This document shows, piece by piece, positions 21,361-63,308 of a stretch of 64,000 bases of DNA; within the stretch, counting starts at the first letter, position 1, and each line of letters starts with the position of its first letter. Made by a program: the position numbers and the translations under genes. The DNA is from Orbicella franksi (Eukaryota), in contig OZ116706.1 of assembly GCA_964199315.1 (NCBI GenBank), forward strand, positions 8,990,001 through 9,054,000, in the 5' to 3' direction. The notes beneath the pieces are model-generated. The model was not told the DNA's origin. It worked only from the letters and a program-made list of their open reading frames with translations, and ran no database searches.

Positions 21361-22588
21361 ATTGGCCCTAAAACGGATCCCCAGGGATCCGTTTTAGGGC
21401 CAATCCTGTATTTGTTATACACATCGCCCATCGGGGACATCATCAAACGGCACGGACTTAACTACCATCTATACGCTGATGACACCCAGCTCTACCTCTC
21501 ATTTAAGCCCAACTACGCCGAACAACCTGGTTCTATTGCTAAAATAGAAGCATGTGTTTCTGAGATCGACTCGTGGATGGTGTGCAATAAGCTGAAACTA
21601 AACGGAGGAAAGACGGAGCTTTTGATCTTGAGCGCACGACATCGTCCACCCCCATTAATAGACCACGTCGATGTGTCTGGTGAACAGATCGAGCCATCTA
21701 CCTCTGCAAAGAACATTGGAGTCATCTTTGATGAGTACATGTCACTGGAAAAGCATGTTACCAGTACCTGCAAGGCCTGTTTCTTCCATCTTAGAAACAT
21801 TAGCAGGATAAGAGTCTGTCTATCTCTAGCAGACACTGAAAAGTTAGTACATGCATTCATCACTTCCAAACTAGATAACGCCAACTCGCTTCTATATGGA
21901 CTACCAAAATTTTTGATAGATCGTCTACAAAATGTCCAGAATGCTGCGGCTCGCGTTGTTACCAGAACAAGGAAATACGATCATATCAAGCCGGTTTTAA
22001 AGCAGCTACACTGGCTTCCAATAAGCCAGCGCATCAATTATAAGATTTTACTTTTAACCTATAAAGCGCTCAATGGCCAGTCCCCTAATTACATTACTGA
22101 ACTGCTAGAGCCTTATGTACCAAGCAGAAATCTTCGATCCTCCTCCAAAACCTCTTGAAAGTACCACCTGTCAAGTTAATAGGCTATGGTCATAGGTGTT
22201 TCTCTTTTGTAGCACCTAGCCTATGGAACTCTCTTCCGAACAATATAAGAGGGAGCGGCTCGCTATCATATTTTAAGACTTGTATAAAGACATATCTTTT
22301 TAACAAATTTTATAACTAGACTTTTGGTTAGTTAGTTAATTAGTAGATTAGATAGTTTAGCTAGTTAGTTAGCCAGTCACTTAGTTAAGTTAGTCAGTTT
22401 TTATTTAAAGGTTTTAATGATTCCTAGTTTTACTTTCATTTTTACAGCTTAGCTATTTTATTTGTTAGTAATTTTTTATCACTGATGTAAATTTTTAATG
22501 TAAATTTTATTTTTAATAACATTTTTTACTGTAAAGCGCCATGAGCCCTGGATATGGCGCTATACAAATCTATTATTATTATTATTAT
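21361..22588 (+). mobile_element. 5'-truncated LINE (CR1/L2 group), reverse transcriptase C-terminal part, frameshifted
   Basis: [16 protein letters not shown] and [11 protein letters not shown] motifs. A frameshift near 22150 continues as ...SFVAPSLWNSLP...; the 3' end has the GTAAAGCGCC...GGCGCTATAC stem-loop and a (TAT)n tail. Confidence 0.92.
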
Positions 22589-36700: not shown

Positions 36701-39700
36701 GGGAGGGAGTGTCCTTGTCATAAACAACTAAATGAATCTCCCTTAATGAGCTGCCCGGATTATTCTTACTGAATGCCAAAACTTCTTCAAAGGAAGCAGC
36801 AGCCACGCGATCACGAGGATAACCAAGATTTCCCGTTCCAAGAGCAGGAATAGCGATGCTGACAAGTTTTCGCTTCTGAGCTTCATTGAGGCATTTCTTT
36901 ATGATACCACGCAATTCCTGCAAGGGATTTACGATTTTGCGATTCATTACTTTTAACCATGTTAGATTGGGGCGGCTTAGCTCAGTGGGTTGTATGCTCA
37001 CCTTACATGCAAGAGATGGCGGGTAAAACTCTCAACTGGATCATTAACTAGGGATAGCGTAAGAAATATAAGCGGTAACCGCTAAATCATGCTGACCGAT
37101 TTCACTCTTAAAAAAAACCCGCACACACACAATTCATGAAACAACTTTGATTGGTGCGCCAAATAAGCAGCGTTGTATCATTAAGTCAGTGACAGCGTTG
37201 ACGCTGGGCTTCTGTGAAGGGAGTCAAGTTGTATGCGAACCGCACAACCGGTCAGGACGGTGAAGACTTGCCGTTGTTTTTGCTGCAATAATTCAACAAA
37301 ATAGATGAAGTTCGCGACCCCTCTTAAATTCTGAGCAGATACTTTGGTATCTTTGGTAATGAGCGCTCAATGAACATAAAGTACCATTCAGTTCACGCAG
37401 ATGGTACAACCTTGAGTAACATGGAACTATAAGTGTCGCTTATACGGTTTCTGGTTAGCTTAAATCAGCCTGTTAAAACAATTTTAGCCCACTTAATTCC
37501 GTATAGCACCCTGAAATTGTTAAAAGTCAAGTCTCTCTAGCTGACGTGGATGCTTACAATCTGTCTAAAAACAAGTTCATGTAGTGCGTAGTTTGACTTT
37601 GTTTACATAACGGTTTCCAATAGCTACAATCATGGTAAAACGTCTTGGGACAAATTTACACTTTTGGTGCTTTTGCACACACGCCAGACGCGAATACAAC
37701 TGAACCTGCCTAGCTTCTCCTCCACATACAATGCTGAAAACTAGTACCTGCAATTTCTCCTGAGTTTGAACATTGCATTGCGTGGGGAGGGGGCAAAAGC
37801 AACGCGTTTTGTAAATTTTAAAATTCAGTTGTAAAATACAGATAATTCGCTGCATTATACATCATTTTCCCGAGGACTTTTGTCCATCATCGTAACTTAC
37901 ACGATTAAACGTTTTTGTTTCTAACCACATTGATTTTCCCTTGGAACTTAAACCGAAAACTGCGTATCTGTGACCCTTAATGTCCAATATATTTTGTACC
38001 TGTTCGCCGCTTTGTTGGTTCCATGTAGCACACGACGTGTGGAAGACATGCTTACAATTCAGCTTTCCTCCACTTGTTACCACTATGTCTCCAGTGTTTA
38101 CCTTACCAATCGCCTTACATTCTTGCTGTAGAGCAGGACCGGCAGCATTACTCAGGGCTTTGGCACTTGCGTTTCTGCTAAGATCGAGGTCTGATGACGC
38201 CGAGTTGACGATAGCGTCAACCTGAGGAACAACAACACAAAGAGCCCTTTGTTAACATCTGTCATAATATAACCACTGTGTCAGATCCTAATTTCGCTAT
38301 ATTAGAATAACAGACAATTTTCGACTCTACGAAATGGCGAGAAATCGCTTTTTACCTTATTTGTTTATCGATACCACAAAAAAGGAGGTAAAATTGAAAG
38401 AAAAAATGCGGCATCTTGAGACTTATGATCTTTACTGATCTTGAGTGAGAGGTACAAATTATTGAAATTGGCATGATAATATATAAAGGCCAAGTTTTTT
38501 AAAATTACAGTTTACACGACAGGCGTTTCAATCATGTTTGTCACTGCAGAATGCCTTCTATTCCTATTGACGTTGAAATGGCTGAAATTTAAAGCAACAT
38601 CTATTCACGTAATTATAGAAATGTTCCGACTTGCCTTTTCTTGAGACATATTACCAGTAACAAGAATCAGTTTTAAGTCTTCCGATGTCTTGATGACATT
38701 TGGAATATCTGCAGTTGATGCAGTCGACGGTGTACTGGGCATTGACTTCTTTCTTCCCTTGCCTTTGCTCGCTTTGACCTTTACCTTTGAATCTGAAGAG
38801 CTCTCATAGTTGGGATCATGGAAAAATCTGGAATCCATCTCCTTCACAAAGGCCTTTACAACATTATCGTCGGTGCTGGTGAACTGAATCTCAGACAAAC
38901 GACAACCTGGATTTTCTTGAGAAAACACTACAGCTGAATCGACCATAATTTTTGCGCACAACTGATATGGAAAATCATAGACGCCTGTGCTAATGGCTGG
39001 TAATGCGATTGATTTATAGCTTTTGGCAGAATCTAGGGCATTTTTTACTGTATAACTTAGAAGGCTCTCTTGTCTTGGAGACCTGCCCATCCTCTTTTCC
39101 CAAGCTGCTTCCTTTGTCCATTTCGGTCCTACAGCATGAATGACTTTCTTGAACGGCAATTTTCCAGCAGAAGTTGCAACTACATGCCCATCTAGAAGCG
39201 GCCCTCGGTCGACGATGTATTGATCACATTCGTCCTTGAAGACTTCTCCGGCCGCTTCAGCTATAGCTTTGGAGACACCACCCACATGATGGAGGTTGGA
39301 GTTGGCTGCATTGACAATCACGTCCACATTTCGATCGCAGATGTTGTCTTTAAAAACCAGAATGTTTTTTCCTTCTGGGGTAAGGAAACTACAGAGCTTC
39401 TCTTTTTTCCCTTGATTTTCTTCCTTTTTTTCTCCTGGTTTCTTTGACGATTCATACTTTTCTGAAATATAGTGTTCGATGACACATTTATTCTCATTCT
39501 CCATAAGACTTAACAATTTCTTGCCCTTGCTCTGACCCAGTACTTTGCGCATTCCTGGCTTGTTAAGGAATAACTTTTCGCTCAGAACCTTGGATGCCAG
39601 ATCTTGAACCAATTTTGTCCCTTTTTGAACTCCGTCAGTCGTTCCAGAGATGCTCAAACCTTCGTCATCTTCGTCTAGCTTTATCCGTGTGGAATATTCT

Positions 39701-42700
39701 TTCAAATCTTCTTCTATTTGCCGAAATTCCTGTTCTCTGTACTTTGCAAGGAATCGCCTGCATCCTTTGGGAAGTCTCACCACGTTGCTGACAATGGTGT
39801 TTTCTTTCAAAAAGCACCTGACAGCAGCCAGGGCGGATGAAACCTCATCCTTTGTTCCCACTAACCTTATTTTCTTGCTGCGTCTGTCAAAAGAGAGGCT
39901 CAAAATACGCTTTTCGGTCAGATCATATCTTAACTGACGCCACTTTTCGCTTTTTTCGAGCTGAACTTGATCCTCATCTAAGTCAAAGCATTCTTCGACA
40001 ACCAGTCGTTTAACCAACTCGGCAGCTTTTTCAGCAACTTCAGTTTTCATTCCCATAACTACTACACCGTCTTTCCTTTCTGAATCAAAGGCCAAGCCAG
40101 CTTGTAAATCGCTGGCTGTGAATTGGTCGTTAATGAATGCTCGACAGGCTGTACTCCTAAGCATTTCGACGGTATTCTGCGACATCTCAAGGCTTATTTC
40201 CTTTACTTTGGCAATCGTCTCCCATAGCGCTGCAGAAACCTTGTGAATGGTGATGGAAGGAGCACGAATTTGAACCTTTCCCGTTTCTAGGAGTATGCTG
40301 ACTTGAGTTTCTTCGTATTCGGCTTCTAGTTCCTTTCCAAAGTCTAGATCTCTTAGGAACTGCAGTCTCACAGTATGGTCAATATCTATCGACTTTGTTT
40401 CCATAGAAGCCTTAAGTTTGGCTTTTCTCTCGATGCTTGTCTTTAATTCTTGCAAATCATTCATGAGTCCGTCAACATCTTGCTTCTTTCCTGTGAGGGA
40501 AATTACATGCTGCTGAGCTACGCAACGCACTTTCACTTTTTCTTCCATGGCACTAACATTTTTCATAAAGTTATCCACCACAGCTTTCCAAGCTTCAGGC
40601 AGGACATGCGAAGTGGCTGTCTGAAATTGTTGCCTGAAAGAAGCGATGACTTCGCATGCCTCATCAAATTTTTTCCTGTCTGCTGATACTTTATCCACAG
40701 GCCTGACGATTATGCTACTGGTGCCTTCTTCCCAGGTTATCGTTACACCATGATCGTCCTGGACCTGCGTGAACTCAGCTTTGTAGTGCTCACAAATAAA
40801 GAGCATTACTTGTGAGTCTAATGGGATACTTGTCATCAGCTCAACTTCCTGTGCTTCCGGCTGAGAGACTGGTTTCCCAAGGAAAGGGCTGTGGAGACTT
40901 ACTTCCAAGTTTGCCCCGTTAAGGGAGTGGCTCTTCGACAAAACTTTCGTAGCAACTGCAAGGGAAAGTGAATTAACCAACTGGTCAGTTGATGCGATAT
41001 GCTACTAATTAAAGGCTTGTTAAGAGATAAAATTTACCGTCTAATTTTGATTTCGTAATATTTCAGACAACAGTTAAGTATCTGGCATCCTTCTTTCAAG
41101 AAATGAACACGAGACCATCAATTTACCGAAAGGTGTTGGCGCCCACCAACAATGCCTAAAGCTTAATTTCTTTCGCTCCTCCTGGTTACCTCTAGAAAGC
41201 ATGCAAGAAGACGGTGCTTTAGTAACTTGCAGGGATTCTTGTTTCCACTCAGTTCAAAGAAAGTTTCAGTATATCCTGATTCCGAAAAGTTAAGAAGGCA
41301 ATATTCTCCGCGAACATTAGCCTTCCCATAGCCGTTATTTTGTCCTCGACTAGAAGGTCTGTTAACAGACTATATATAAGATCAGATTGAGCTTTGACAG
41401 ACACGGACAATGATTCGATTCAGCTCCCCTACTAAATAAAGCGCCCTCTATCTGATGAGCACTCCCCATAAAGTGCGCGCCGTTTAATCAATAAGTGCCC
41501 CTTCCAAAACGTGTCCTAATAGGGGAGATAACATTCAAGGCATTGACGTGGAATGAATTATGAAGTCTCCATTTTCATCCGCATGTAACATTGAACATTA
41601 TGACTATGAGAGCTCCCATAGTTACAGCTCTTAAGTTAAAGCAGCTGTCTTTTAAGTGTTGTATCACATTCAGATGCAAATGGTCAAAAAGAAACAAGCG
41701 TTATGTCACTATAAGTGCCTTATATCCAGTAAGCGCCCTCCTCTAAGCTACCAAAAGTAACAGGGTACTACGTCGAATCATTACAGTTCGTCAAGGCCCA
41801 GAAAGTTAAACATATATCTATATGTATACGTGGTTTAACTCAATAATCTTAGCTCTGCGAAGATAGGATATTTTAATACCTTCTGGGTCCACGAAGTGGA
41901 CCAGTGCGCATCCTTCCTTTATATTAAGTTCTACTTTGATGACCTCACCGCCCCCGTTCTTGGGGTTTTCAAAATGGTAAAGAACTGCATCCTCAGTGGT
42001 GTTTTCCCTGTTCAGACATGTCACTTGCACACAATTGCAAACGGGAACTTGTTCGATTGAGAGCTGTCTACCCTCCAGTTGTCTCTTGGCAACCTTCTGT
42101 GTAATGGCTTGATAGTCTGCCGAAAGAATTGTAGTTTCCCAGCTCCCAGATTACTTAAACACTCGTAAATGATTAAAAAAAAAAAAAGATAATAGGGCAA
42201 TAGCATGAATTTTGGAGGGCATATAGTTTATTTGTGGCCCGAGTAGCATCATTTGCGCCCTCGCTTCGCTTTAACTATATGCCCGACAAAAGTCATTTGA
42301 TTATCATTATTATCAATACACTAGGCCAAATCGCACAAGTTCATTTCAATTAATAAGAAAAAAATGCTTAACAGAGATGTAGCATGAAGCTAAGATGTAG
42401 AAAGTTGTTGCTACAGTACGATCAGCTAAACAAGAGCCAAATAAAATTCCTTTCTGTATACAATAAAAGTCAAATGTAATCTAGTATTAAAAAGATTAGT
42501 AAAAAATGATTAGCAAAAATGATCAAATGAGTGCCTTGTAAGCTGCCGCCATCCCTCTGTGCCGCGGCGAGCAAAATGAAAACACAACGAAAACCAACTA
42601 AACTCAAGTAACTTCTCCGCATCTTTCCGAACGCCGTCCGTGTTCCACCCTTCCATGAGGTATCGATTCAATTTCTACCTGTCTCCAAACTGAATGGATC

Positions 42701-62081: not shown

Positions 62082-63308
62082 ACTGACAAATGTGACTAAA
62101 CGACGACTAAACACCCGGCCAAGTCTGTAGACTTAACATTTTACAGAAATCAGGGATATAGTATTATACATCCGTATAATACTCTTATTAATCTTTGTTT
62201 TTCTCTTTCTCGTCTATATTTTCGTACACATTTTGCTTCACTGCCTTGTAACTCTCGGCTACTTCCTTTGTAATGTTTCATACTATGCGTATTTGAGGTA
62301 TAGGTTAGAAATTCTTGTTTCCACAGATCTCCATACCTCAGTTTCTGACCCAAGCTCTGATATAGACCAAAAAGGCGGTCTTCAATGGACAGCTTACCCA
62401 GATGTCTTAAAAGCAAACCAGCCCCCGGGTCAAATAATGTGGAAAAGGTACGAAGATAGTCTTCCTGGATTTGAAGGCTGTGGCACAGTTGTCGTGACTT
62501 TCACTTTCTACGATGGTGTACAGAGTTCGGAGCACCCAAGCCCCGGTGAAATGTACAAAGGAATGTCTTGCATTGCGTACCTCCCTGACACACAGGAAGG
62601 CAAGCAGATTTTAAAGTCATTACGGAAAGCTTTTGACGCTCGCCTGGTGTTCACTGTTTCAAGGTCTGCTTCAGATCCACCAGCCCAAGTCGCACTAAAT
62701 GGCGTCGAACTGAAGACATCAGCAGAAAGTAATGCAAGGTAAGCAGCTTCATAGATAACATTTCGTAAGAGTTTTGTGGTAAAGTCCTATAGCCTCTTGA
62801 TGTCGGCAAAACTCCACCTAAACAATAGGTCAAAAAGCGGTTTTTACTATAGTGTTATCAAATGATTTGAAGAAAATGTTAACTCATCAGAATTTGAATG
62901 AATGCACAGTTACTAAAAGATTCAGGAAGTCGCCTTTTACGATTACGAAAAAACTTTAAGGAGATGGGATGGGGTTGTCATCACCCTGTAAATACGCGGA
63001 AAAACCACCTCGCAATTAATTAAGTTATATATTGTGATTACTTTACTATTACGTATTACATACGGGCTAGTCCTCATGACAATACTAGGGGGGGAGTGTA
63101 AATAAGGCCTTTAACTTCATTATTTTGCGAGTCGTATAAACTTTGTCGTCGTGTTTCTTCGAATGGGTTTGAGATATATAATGTACTTTACAAGTTAGTT
63201 TTGAGACTCATGCAAACTTCACTCTTTGAATATTGCAGAAACGGCTACCCAGACCATGGATATTTGTCAAGAGTAAGAAAGCAACTAGCTGCTAAAGGAT
63301 TTCAATAA
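54566..63308 (+). CDS. DTX3L: DTX3L-like Deltex E3 ligase, 6 coding exons, about 1299 aa: RRM, KH-like, disordered linker, macrodomain, linker, RING-HC, DTC
   Basis: Exons 54566-54758, 57248-57333, 58180-61081, 61679-61915, 62327-62738, 63239-63308. Sum is 3900 nt, all GT-AG and phase compatible. RING CALC..CVQHKFCDDC..CPVC; DTC NQPPG..LPG..EHPSPG..AYLPD..EG..GYPD. Confidence 0.85.
57248..57333 (+). CDS. DTX3L-like exon 2 (not in the ORF track)
   Basis: VAESVLDRRHEIDGALVTLERHQSLHTDQ completes the RRM; cag/gt borders. Confidence 0.8.
57501..57790. mobile_element. MITE with ~35-bp TIRs
   Basis: GGGACTCTCATATAGAAAGTACGGGAGTGCTCGTCG ... CGACGAACACCCCCGTCCTTTTTATATGGGAGTCTC. Confidence 0.7.
58180..61081 (+). 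CDS. DTX3L-like exon 3: KH-like domain, low-complexity linkers, divergent macrodomain (~59290-59845)
   Basis: GITVLLQIGDITSSDVDVLLSPAN...TSCGNLPCRGVLHTVLP...SVALPPLG...INDIRIV is a macro fold signature. Confidence 0.85.
61679..61915 (+). CDS. DTX3L-like exon 4, C3HC4 RING
   Basis: CALC-x13-CVQHKFCDDC-x10-CPVC. Confidence 0.88.
62041..62081. repeat. (TTG)n microsatellite
   Basis: Direct reading. Confidence 0.9.
62327..62738 (+). CDS. DTX3L-like exon 5, Deltex C-terminal (DTC) domain
   Basis: NQPPGQIMW...LPGFEGCGT...EHPSPGEMY...AYLPDTQEGKQIL..LRKAFDARLVFT. Confidence 0.9.
63239..63308 (+). CDS. DTX3L-like exon 6, DTC end (not in the ORF track)
   Basis: (R)NGYPDHGYLSRVRKQLAAKGFQ*; the phase-2 junction matches exon 5. 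Confidence 0.88.

Follow-up and report, generated by a model that had tools for sequence, protein, structure and literature searches.

The DNA analysed here is a 64,000-nucleotide stretch of a stony-coral chromosome (G000:C9; Orbicella franksi, contig OZ116706.1), hereafter called the window. Its plus strand carries a multi-exon gene coding for a DTX3L-type ubiquitin ligase, in which all the side chains known to contact ADP-ribose in the C-terminal DTC domain, and the catalytic glutamate, have been substituted. The same substitutions were found in the orthologous genes of other stony corals, where the domain evolves under purifying selection. We favour, with modest confidence, the view that this gene encodes a conserved, ADP-ribose-blind DTC carried by a still functional RING ligase, which would ubiquitylate lysine residues while the DTC and an internal macrodomain would serve as scaffold, regulator or decoy.

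To our knowledge, the DELTEX ligases are the only RING E3 enzymes which supply catalytic residues for the ubiquitylation of an ADP-ribose hydroxyl group. In the crystal structure of DTX2 with ADP-ribose, the adenine is stacked by Trp578 and His594, His582 is hydrogen-bonded to the proximal ribose and the Arg535 side chain binds the diphosphate and contacts the distal ribose, the remaining contacts, by Ser567 and Ser568, being made by the main chain only (PMC7442474). The DTX2 S568A/H582A/H594A mutant, designed against ADP-ribose binding, abrogated the ubiquitylation of a PARylated model substrate (PMC7442474). His582 and Glu608 form with the 3'-hydroxyl group a relay resembling a catalytic triad, and every tested substitution of either residue impaired the formation of Ub-NAD+, strongly so in the case of the conservative E608Q; the pair is termed strictly conserved among DTX proteins (PMC7615817). 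For DTX3L, one study describes Y719A as defective in the ubiquitylation of single-stranded DNA and includes H707A and E733A in the same assay (PMC11460948). The three residues H707, Y719 and E733 are again given as strictly conserved in a 2026 preprint (bioRxiv 10.64898/2026.04.23.720386).

The coral DTC was aligned by HMMER to the solved chains of DTX3L (3pg6), DTX2 (6y22) and DTX1 (6y5n), the DTX2 residue numbers being obtained by adding 387 to the 6y22 chain index. The best match was 3pg6 (phmmer, 7e-26, about 50% identity). In these alignments the coral V-A-L-N-G-V-E-L-K-T was paired with V-V-W-N-E-I-H-H-K-T, N-GYPD with H-GYPD of DTX2 and Y-GYPD of DTX3L, and V-R-K-Q-L with V-L-A-E-L of DTX2 and V-K-E-E-L of DTX3L. 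DTX2 Trp578 is thus replaced by Leu (62695-62697), His582 by Glu (62707-62709) and His583 by Leu (62710-62712), so that the whole W-N-[DE]-I-H-H block, the codons of which were compared across eight corals, reads L-N-G-V-E-L (62695..62712, plus strand). DTX2 His594 (DTX3L Tyr719) is replaced by Asn (63240-63242) and Glu608 (DTX3L Glu733) by Gln (63282-63284). The alignment to 6y22 (chain index 148) further revealed a Cys codon (62569-62571) at the position of Arg535. Neither the catalytic His-Glu pair (His582/Glu608 in DTX2, His707/Glu733 in DTX3L), nor the adenine-stacking residues (Trp578 and His594, the latter being Tyr or Phe in DTX3L-like proteins), nor the Arg535 contact to the diphosphate and distal ribose is left: Glu and Gln, Leu and Asn, and Cys, respectively, occupy these places. 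Of the side chains published as ADP-ribose contacts, all four (Arg535, Trp578, His582 and His594) are substituted, as is the catalytic Glu608, while EHPSPG, AYLPD and GYPD are retained.

The original prediction, made from the letters of the window alone, had listed the changes in the Deltex motif, NGYPD and VRKQL together with the retained EHPxPG, AYLPD and GYPD motifs. The three structure-anchored alignments bear it out, and its equivalence of DTX2 H582/H594/E608 with DTX3L H707/Y719/E733 is correct according to PMC11460948. Its list of changes was real and incomplete, since the replacement of Arg535 by Cys had been overlooked. At the level of the sequence, its central claim, the loss of the residues handling ADP-ribose, can be upheld. 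A misalignment hiding conserved His or Glu residues elsewhere was ruled out: the three HMMER alignments and a MAFFT alignment of 26 sequences agree, and the coral DTC has no conserved His elsewhere except the structural one of EHPxPG. The register is also fixed by the intron found just before the residue preceding GYPD, which lies at the same place in the canonical paralogues.

The region in which these changes had been noticed (62680-63308) begins in the final part of the DTC exon and extends over the last intron and the last exon. The DTC exon (62327..62738, plus strand) codes for the remaining part of a long RING-DTC linker and for the DTC from NQPPG to ELKTSAESNA, and ends inside a split Arg codon. 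The domain belongs to PF18102 (106.4 bits for a cut-off of 25, E = 1.6e-30), and a profile scan of the coral's own genome found the same locus at 4.3e-28. The last intron (62739..63238, 500 nucleotides, GT..AG) splits the Arg codon just before N-GYPD, and the last exon (63239..63308) codes for N-GYPD and V-R-K-Q-L before the TAA stop codon at 63306-63308. The joints 61915|62327 and 62738|63239, both with GT..AG introns, were seen in contigs of polyadenylated (polyA) RNA (X1), and the second one also in raw reads (X24). The RNA contigs, which have joints on both sides of the DTC exon, did not show any base difference from the genome across 62327-63308. An error of the assembly is consequently not the cause of the replaced residues.

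The DTC is preceded by a RING exon (61679..61915, plus strand; Pfam zf-C3HC4_2 and zf-RING_2), which codes for a C3HC4 RING with all eight zinc ligands and for the start of the linker. Further upstream, a large exon (58180..61081, plus strand; Pfam Macro, 2.7e-14) contains disordered regions and a degenerate macrodomain at about 59290-59845; its acceptor, near 58178, is marked by the loose end of an RNA contig, and its donor, AG|GTAATG, lies at 61082. A putative first coding exon (54566..54757, plus strand, ATG at 54566, 3' boundary approximate) codes for an RRM/NID-like N-terminus of the PARP14 type. Its translation matches the N-terminus of a full-length orthologue from Oculina (P0018), and in the orthologous loci open reading frames with PF07292 and PF23085 lie in the same relative place. 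A small exon between this one and the large exon was looked for and not located. The order of the domains is thus RRM/NID, macrodomain, RING and DTC, as in P0018, in which PF07292, PF23085, PF01661 and PF18102 are all present. Two features of the introns were recorded in passing. In the intron between the large exon and the RING exon, a stretch of some 30 bases (61311-61341) reached an RNA word depth of up to about 1373 in X1, with a G>T difference at 61325 at a depth of about 8700, and raw-read loose ends flank it on both sides; it resembles a widely dispersed repeat or part of an abundant RNA, and not a portion of the transcript of the DTC gene. The intron between the RING and DTC exons contains a (TTG)n/(GTT)n microsatellite at 62040-62083.

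Nine orthologues were recovered from other stony corals, and all of them carry the same replacements with intact splice sites. Two of them, P0018 of Oculina patagonica (1314 residues; NID/RRM, macrodomain, RING and DTC) and P0022 of Montipora foliosa, are full-length proteins annotated by NCBI and read [AV][LI]NGIELKT, [ND]-GYPD and xxxQL. The seven others are loci from ENA assemblies (L020-L026), in all of which the RING, DTC and last exons are intact, the GT..AG introns lie in the same places and the same residues are found. As the group spans Montipora and Oculina, which we take to represent the two deep scleractinian lineages (complex and robust), the variant is old. Between the eight corals compared at the codon level, the replaced residues are written by different synonymous codons (GAA/GAG for Glu, AAC/AAT for Asn, CAA/CAG for Gln and CTA/CTG/TTA/TTG for Leu). 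The pairwise ratio of non-synonymous to synonymous substitution rates (dN/dS, or omega) in the DTC ranged from 0.05 to 0.55. The Goldman-Yang estimate for the whole domain was 0.27, and setting omega to 1 cost 52 log-likelihood units (likelihood-ratio statistic of 104, p of about 2e-24). Among the regions of the gene, omega was 0.12 for the RING (eight corals), 0.27 for the DTC, 0.41 for the macrodomain and 0.62 for the rest of the large exon: the RING-DTC module, and foremost the RING, is the most constrained part of the gene. The comparison of orthologues and paralogues with dN/dS, which had been proposed as a check, therefore shows shared replacements and purifying selection on the DTC as a whole. 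The term pseudo-DTC used in the original prediction fits the loss of the ADP-ribose residues, but the decay which it implies is wrong, since the Cys, Glu, Leu and Gln replacements are invariant and purifying selection is strong. The coral DTC is a conserved variant with a remodelled pocket and not a decaying gene.

In 16 full-length metazoan relatives (sponge, amphioxus, Ciona, hemichordate, crinoid, bivalve, lizards, rodent and other coral paralogues), we found WNDIHHKT, [YF]GYPD (AYPD in one case) and E-L or D-L at the position of Glu608 throughout; only the coral orthologues differ. The stony-coral DTC subfamily with the rebuilt pocket is labelled here xEL-type. Every alignment column was then scanned blindly between 136 canonical (His-His) DTCs and 15 xEL-type ones for a residue present in at least 92% of the canonical set and absent from all the xEL-type sequences. 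The only columns retained were those of Arg535 (Arg in 96% of the canonical domains, Cys in 15/15 xEL-type), Trp578 (variable, Leu/Ile/Cys/Ser), His582 (Glu, 15/15), His583 (Leu, 15/15) and Glu608 (Gln, 12/12), and the aromatic residue before GYPD is Asn, Asp or Cys in the xEL-type. As only pocket columns were retained, the remodelling is confined to the ADP-ribose pocket, and most of the replacements are invariant.

A Pfam-profile scan of the whole coral genome revealed about eleven DTC genes. The plus-strand cluster L001-L005 of contig 13 codes for the canonical WNDIHHKT, and the last exons, recovered in four of the five genes, read FGYPD and VKEDL. A classical Deltex gene on contig 12 has a canonical HHKT motif, HGYPD and VAEL. 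The aromatic residue before GYPD and the Glu are kept in all five canonical copies with recovered last exons. Within the canonical cluster of contig 13, L006 (G000:C13:2691554-2694814) reads IIWNDIHLKT, with His583 to Leu as its sole change, which could reflect either an intermediate stage or a separate event. On the minus strand of the same contig (about 2.537-2.589 Mb), L009, L010 and L011 are short RING-DTC genes with the Cys and NG[IV]ELKT and with a different exon structure, an intron being located after GIQG. The last exon of L010 codes for C-GYPD and VKSQL, with the Gln; for L009 and L011, no last exon was found in the loci that had been fetched. In L011, the DTC exon is closely followed, on the minus strand at about 2023-2589 of this locus, by an open reading frame whose GIY-YIG-like motif recalls a Penelope-type retroelement and whose presence may have displaced or disrupted the last exon. 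In a tree built from all columns, the contig-9 orthologues and the contig-13 minus-strand paralogues formed one clade (Shimodaira-Hasegawa-like approximate likelihood-ratio support of 90), which also held two degenerate fragments. When the seven trait columns were left out, a quick free search split the two xEL groups, but a constrained tree holding all 15 sequences together was better by 41 log-likelihood units (p of 0.91 in the approximately unbiased test). A single origin of the xEL set followed by duplication is favoured but not proven. On the range of the variant outside stony corals, a search of the Atlas gave generic DTC clusters only.

The fold of the domain was examined on an AlphaFold2 model of the RING-DTC of the Oculina orthologue (not of the window protein), built from an alignment of 26 rows. 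The predicted local distance difference test score (pLDDT) was above 90 for the DTC, about 70-85 for the RING and below 50 for the RING-DTC linker of 48 residues. The Foldseek comparison of the modelled DTC with 3pg6 gave a template modelling score of 0.89 and a root-mean-square deviation of 2.3 Å at 50% identity, and that with the ADP-ribose-bound DTX2 (6y3j) an E-value of 2.5e-14 and a deviation of 2.5 Å. According to this model, the fold of the solved DTC domains is retained. The short RING-DTC linker of DTX2 sets the pocket beside the thioester of the ubiquitin-charged E2 (E2~Ub). The long linker, which exceeds the canonical one by about 45 residues, is peculiar to the contig-9 orthologue group, the distance from the last RING Cys to NQPxG being about ten residues in the canonical relatives and in the contig-13 xEL paralogues. 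Such a long and floppy linker would fit a lost coupling of the DTC pocket to the thioester.

The original prediction had proposed that ADP-ribose recognition might have moved to the internal macrodomain or to the partner PARP. The macrodomain was aligned to PARP14 macro1, PARP9 macro1 and E. coli YmdB. None of the loops expected of an ADP-ribose-competent macrodomain (NAAN, GGG and G-[VI]-[FY]-G) is present: SPAN stands for NAAN, R-E-G for GGG and PPLGQDGNCIP for PAISSG[VI][FY]G[FY]P, and the phosphate loop now contains an Asp. These replacements are common to the orthologues, while the canonical macro-RING-DTC relatives keep the classical loops. Because its loops have been replaced, the transfer of ADP-ribose reading to the macrodomain has to be rejected. 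Both ADP-ribose-handling domains, the DTC and the macrodomain, thus appear to have changed together in this lineage.

The second part of that proposal, recognition through a partner PARP, is plausible in view of the neighbouring gene. A PARP14-like gene is arranged head-to-head with the ligase gene (33421..40980 and exons further upstream, minus strand) and codes for KH domains, macrodomains, a WWE domain and ADP-ribosyltransferase (ART) exons (Pfam Macro 2e-30 and 1e-27, WWE, KH_PARP14). Its macrodomain loops are canonical (GGGVG and GTGN(L/I)G). An H...Y...I triad (LFHGT, GVYFA and SIFVVF), the pattern expected of an active mono-ADP-ribosyltransferase, is encoded in the ART exons (33421-33699 and 34283-34750, minus strand). 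The neighbour looks competent both to write and to read ADP-ribose. The head-to-head arrangement with a PARP9/PARP14-type gene was also found in the orthologous loci, where an opposite-strand open reading frame with RRM_PARP14 lies beside exon 1. Upstream of the PARP gene, a plus-strand open reading frame (21412-22158), whose match to RVT_1 is weak (E = 2.5e-4, below the cut-off), is probably what remains of a retroelement.

These results are compatible with the following mechanism. The gene would code for an E3 ligase of the ancestral DTX3L-like type (RRM/NID, macrodomain, RING and DTC), belonging to the xEL-type subfamily of stony corals. With the two adenine-stacking residues, the Arg of the phosphate contact and the His-Glu relay which activates the 3'-hydroxyl group of ADP-ribose all apparently gone, the DTC should be unable to bind ADP-ribose in the established manner, or to use the known mechanism for the ubiquitylation of ADP-ribose, NAD+ or the ends of nucleic acids. 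The intact RING, which is under the strongest constraint within the gene, makes it most likely that the protein goes on recruiting E2~Ub and ubiquitylating lysine residues in the ordinary way. In the contig-9 orthologue group, the disordered linker of about 48 residues would uncouple the RING from the DTC; the role left to the ADP-ribose-blind DTC, and to the macrodomain, which is just as degenerate, would be that of a scaffold or of regulatory modules. A connection to ADP-ribose signalling, if there is one, would be provided by the adjacent PARP14-like enzyme or by pairing with the canonical DTX3L-like paralogues. As far as can be judged from sequence, the domain has the features of a pseudoenzyme: the fold is kept, the catalytic residues are lost, purifying selection acts on it and canonical paralogues are present in the same genome.

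Several points weigh against this interpretation. The apparent expression of the gene is low: one raw-read polyA run yielded 57 reads, and the runs X22 and X23 yielded 0 to 1, although these two weigh neither way on expression. The Cys, Glu, Leu and Gln are invariant across the orthologues and the distant paralogues, beyond what an abandoned pocket would need, which may indicate a new ligand or a new chemistry, and the Glu at the position of His582 could in principle act as a base itself. Finally, both the lysine-directed E3 activity and the interaction with the PARP14-like neighbour are inferred. Low expression would suit a decaying pseudogene, an assembly error or a mis-splicing, in which the odd residues would be noise, but the frame and the GT..AG introns are intact in eight coral assemblies and two full-length orthologues are annotated by NCBI. 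Together with the omega of 0.27, so far from neutrality, and the spliced RNA contigs identical to the genome, the intact exons effectively exclude this explanation.

The invariance of the replacements speaks for a re-purposed pocket, in which the xEL-type DTC would bind or activate a different acceptor or ligand through its Cys, Glu and Gln, and would still select substrates or be catalytic. The invariant residues are common to the chromosome-9 orthologues and to chromosome-13 paralogues otherwise highly diverged in the DTC, four of the roughly nine clade-specific invariant columns fall at known pocket positions, and the omega of the DTC is below those of the macrodomain and the linkers. However, no candidate ligand is known, and the same invariance could arise if the pocket has collapsed and its residues are packed together, with two Leu occupying the space and the Glu hydrogen-bonded to the Gln. 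The positions of Trp578 (L/I/C/S) and His594 (N/D/C) vary within the clade, and the long disordered linker of the contig-9 group speaks against the pocket being tightly coupled to the thioester of E2~Ub. We consider such a neofunctionalisation a real, if less likely, alternative. In a bolder form, the xEL-type DTC would be alive, its invariant Cys/Glu/Gln site accepting ubiquitin or activating an acceptor other than ADP-ribose, for example by a MYCBP2-like Cys relay or by recognition of a different immune nucleotide or metabolite; this we regard as improbable, and if true, corals would gain a second, chemically distinct Deltex signalling branch beside the PARP14-like enzymes. A retained ubiquitylation of ADP-ribose, with the Glu at the position of His582 as direct general base and other residues ensuring the binding, could be imagined because a carboxylate is located exactly at the site of the former catalytic imidazole and because neither the general fold nor the main-chain Ser-rich loop region has been lost. 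But Trp578, His594 and Arg535 are all gone, the tested DTX2 His582 and Glu608 substitutions, E608Q included, are all impaired, and the hydroxyl-ubiquitylating enzymes discussed in the same study all use a His (PMC7615817). This activity is very improbable. An ADP-ribose-blind DTC on a functional RING ligase is the interpretation we retain.

Human DTX3L (BBAP, PDB 3PG6) is the closest to the coral protein in sequence and fold. In both, a RING precedes a C-terminal DTC with the EHPxPG, AYLPD and GYPD motifs, and both genes are head-to-head with a macro-PARP gene. The human enzyme, with His707, Tyr719 and Glu733, ubiquitylates ADP-ribose and single-stranded nucleic acids, whereas Glu, Asn and Gln are found in the coral protein, in addition to Cys for Arg and Leu for Trp. 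The coral protein also differs by its internal, degenerate macrodomain and its RING-DTC linker of about 48 residues. According to the 2026 preprint, the macrodomain was lost from DTX3L when PARP9 emerged (bioRxiv 10.64898/2026.04.23.720386). The coral DTC has the same fold as that of human DTX2 in its RING-DTC complex with ADP-ribose (PDB 6Y3J) and aligns colinearly with it through the pocket strands, but the contacts Arg535, Trp578, His582 and His594 and the catalytic Glu608 are all substituted in the coral domain, in which the natural Gln equals the strongly impaired E608Q mutant of DTX2 (PMC7615817). The order RRM/NID, macrodomain, RING and DTC is shared with the invertebrate macro-RING-DTC proteins of sponge, amphioxus, Ciona, bivalve, crinoid and other coral paralogues. 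These keep WNDIHHKT, [YF]GYPD, E-L and the canonical macrodomain loops, whereas the coral xEL orthologue group has lost both sets.

DTC domains without the catalytic His were also found elsewhere. The medaka (Oryzias) 'DTX3L' P0061 has a Ser (WNDISHKT), the eel (Anguilla) proteins P0096 and P0209 read LSDIPLKT, CYPD and VNQIL (Pro-Leu, and Gln-Ile at the Glu position), and Styela P0054 reads WNGIPHKT, with a Pro at the position of His582. In the TRIM71-like P0082 of amphioxus (Branchiostoma), the motifs WNDIQHKT, DGYPD and LRKQL place a Gln at the positions of both His582 and Glu608, and diatom tandem-DTC proteins have WxxIPHKT, again with a Pro at His582. As all these variants lie outside the coral clade in the tree, their losses of the His look like separate changes; most of them keep Trp578 and often Glu608, and none has the coral combination of Cys, Glu-Leu and Gln. 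The statement that the His-Glu pair is strictly conserved thus holds for the classical family only. Several of the proteins P0055, P0131, P0167 and P0185 (Conticribra weissflogii) and P0115 (Cylindrotheca fusiformis) contain DTC domains in tandem, two or three per protein, with W-x-x-[IV]-P-H-K-T, [FY]G[FW]PD and a C-[NH]-x-x-L tail. They look like a distinct, apparently undescribed DTC subfamily outside animals.

The natural loss of the catalytic His is thus broader than corals; of the losses found, the coral set is the most complete replacement and is demonstrably constrained. The fold, the architecture and the pairing with a PARP gene were already known; in the literature searched, no description of a natural DTC without the His-Glu pair was found. 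The coral subfamily can be considered as a natural separation-of-function variant, in which the RING and the DTC fold are under selection, every ADP-ribose-contacting side chain has been removed and the macrodomain has changed in parallel. It makes testable whether the DTC has a function besides the handling of ADP-ribose, and provides the canonical paralogues of the same genome with a natural negative control and possibly with a regulator. Its existence shows a diversification of the PARP14/DTX3L innate-immune module in cnidarians.

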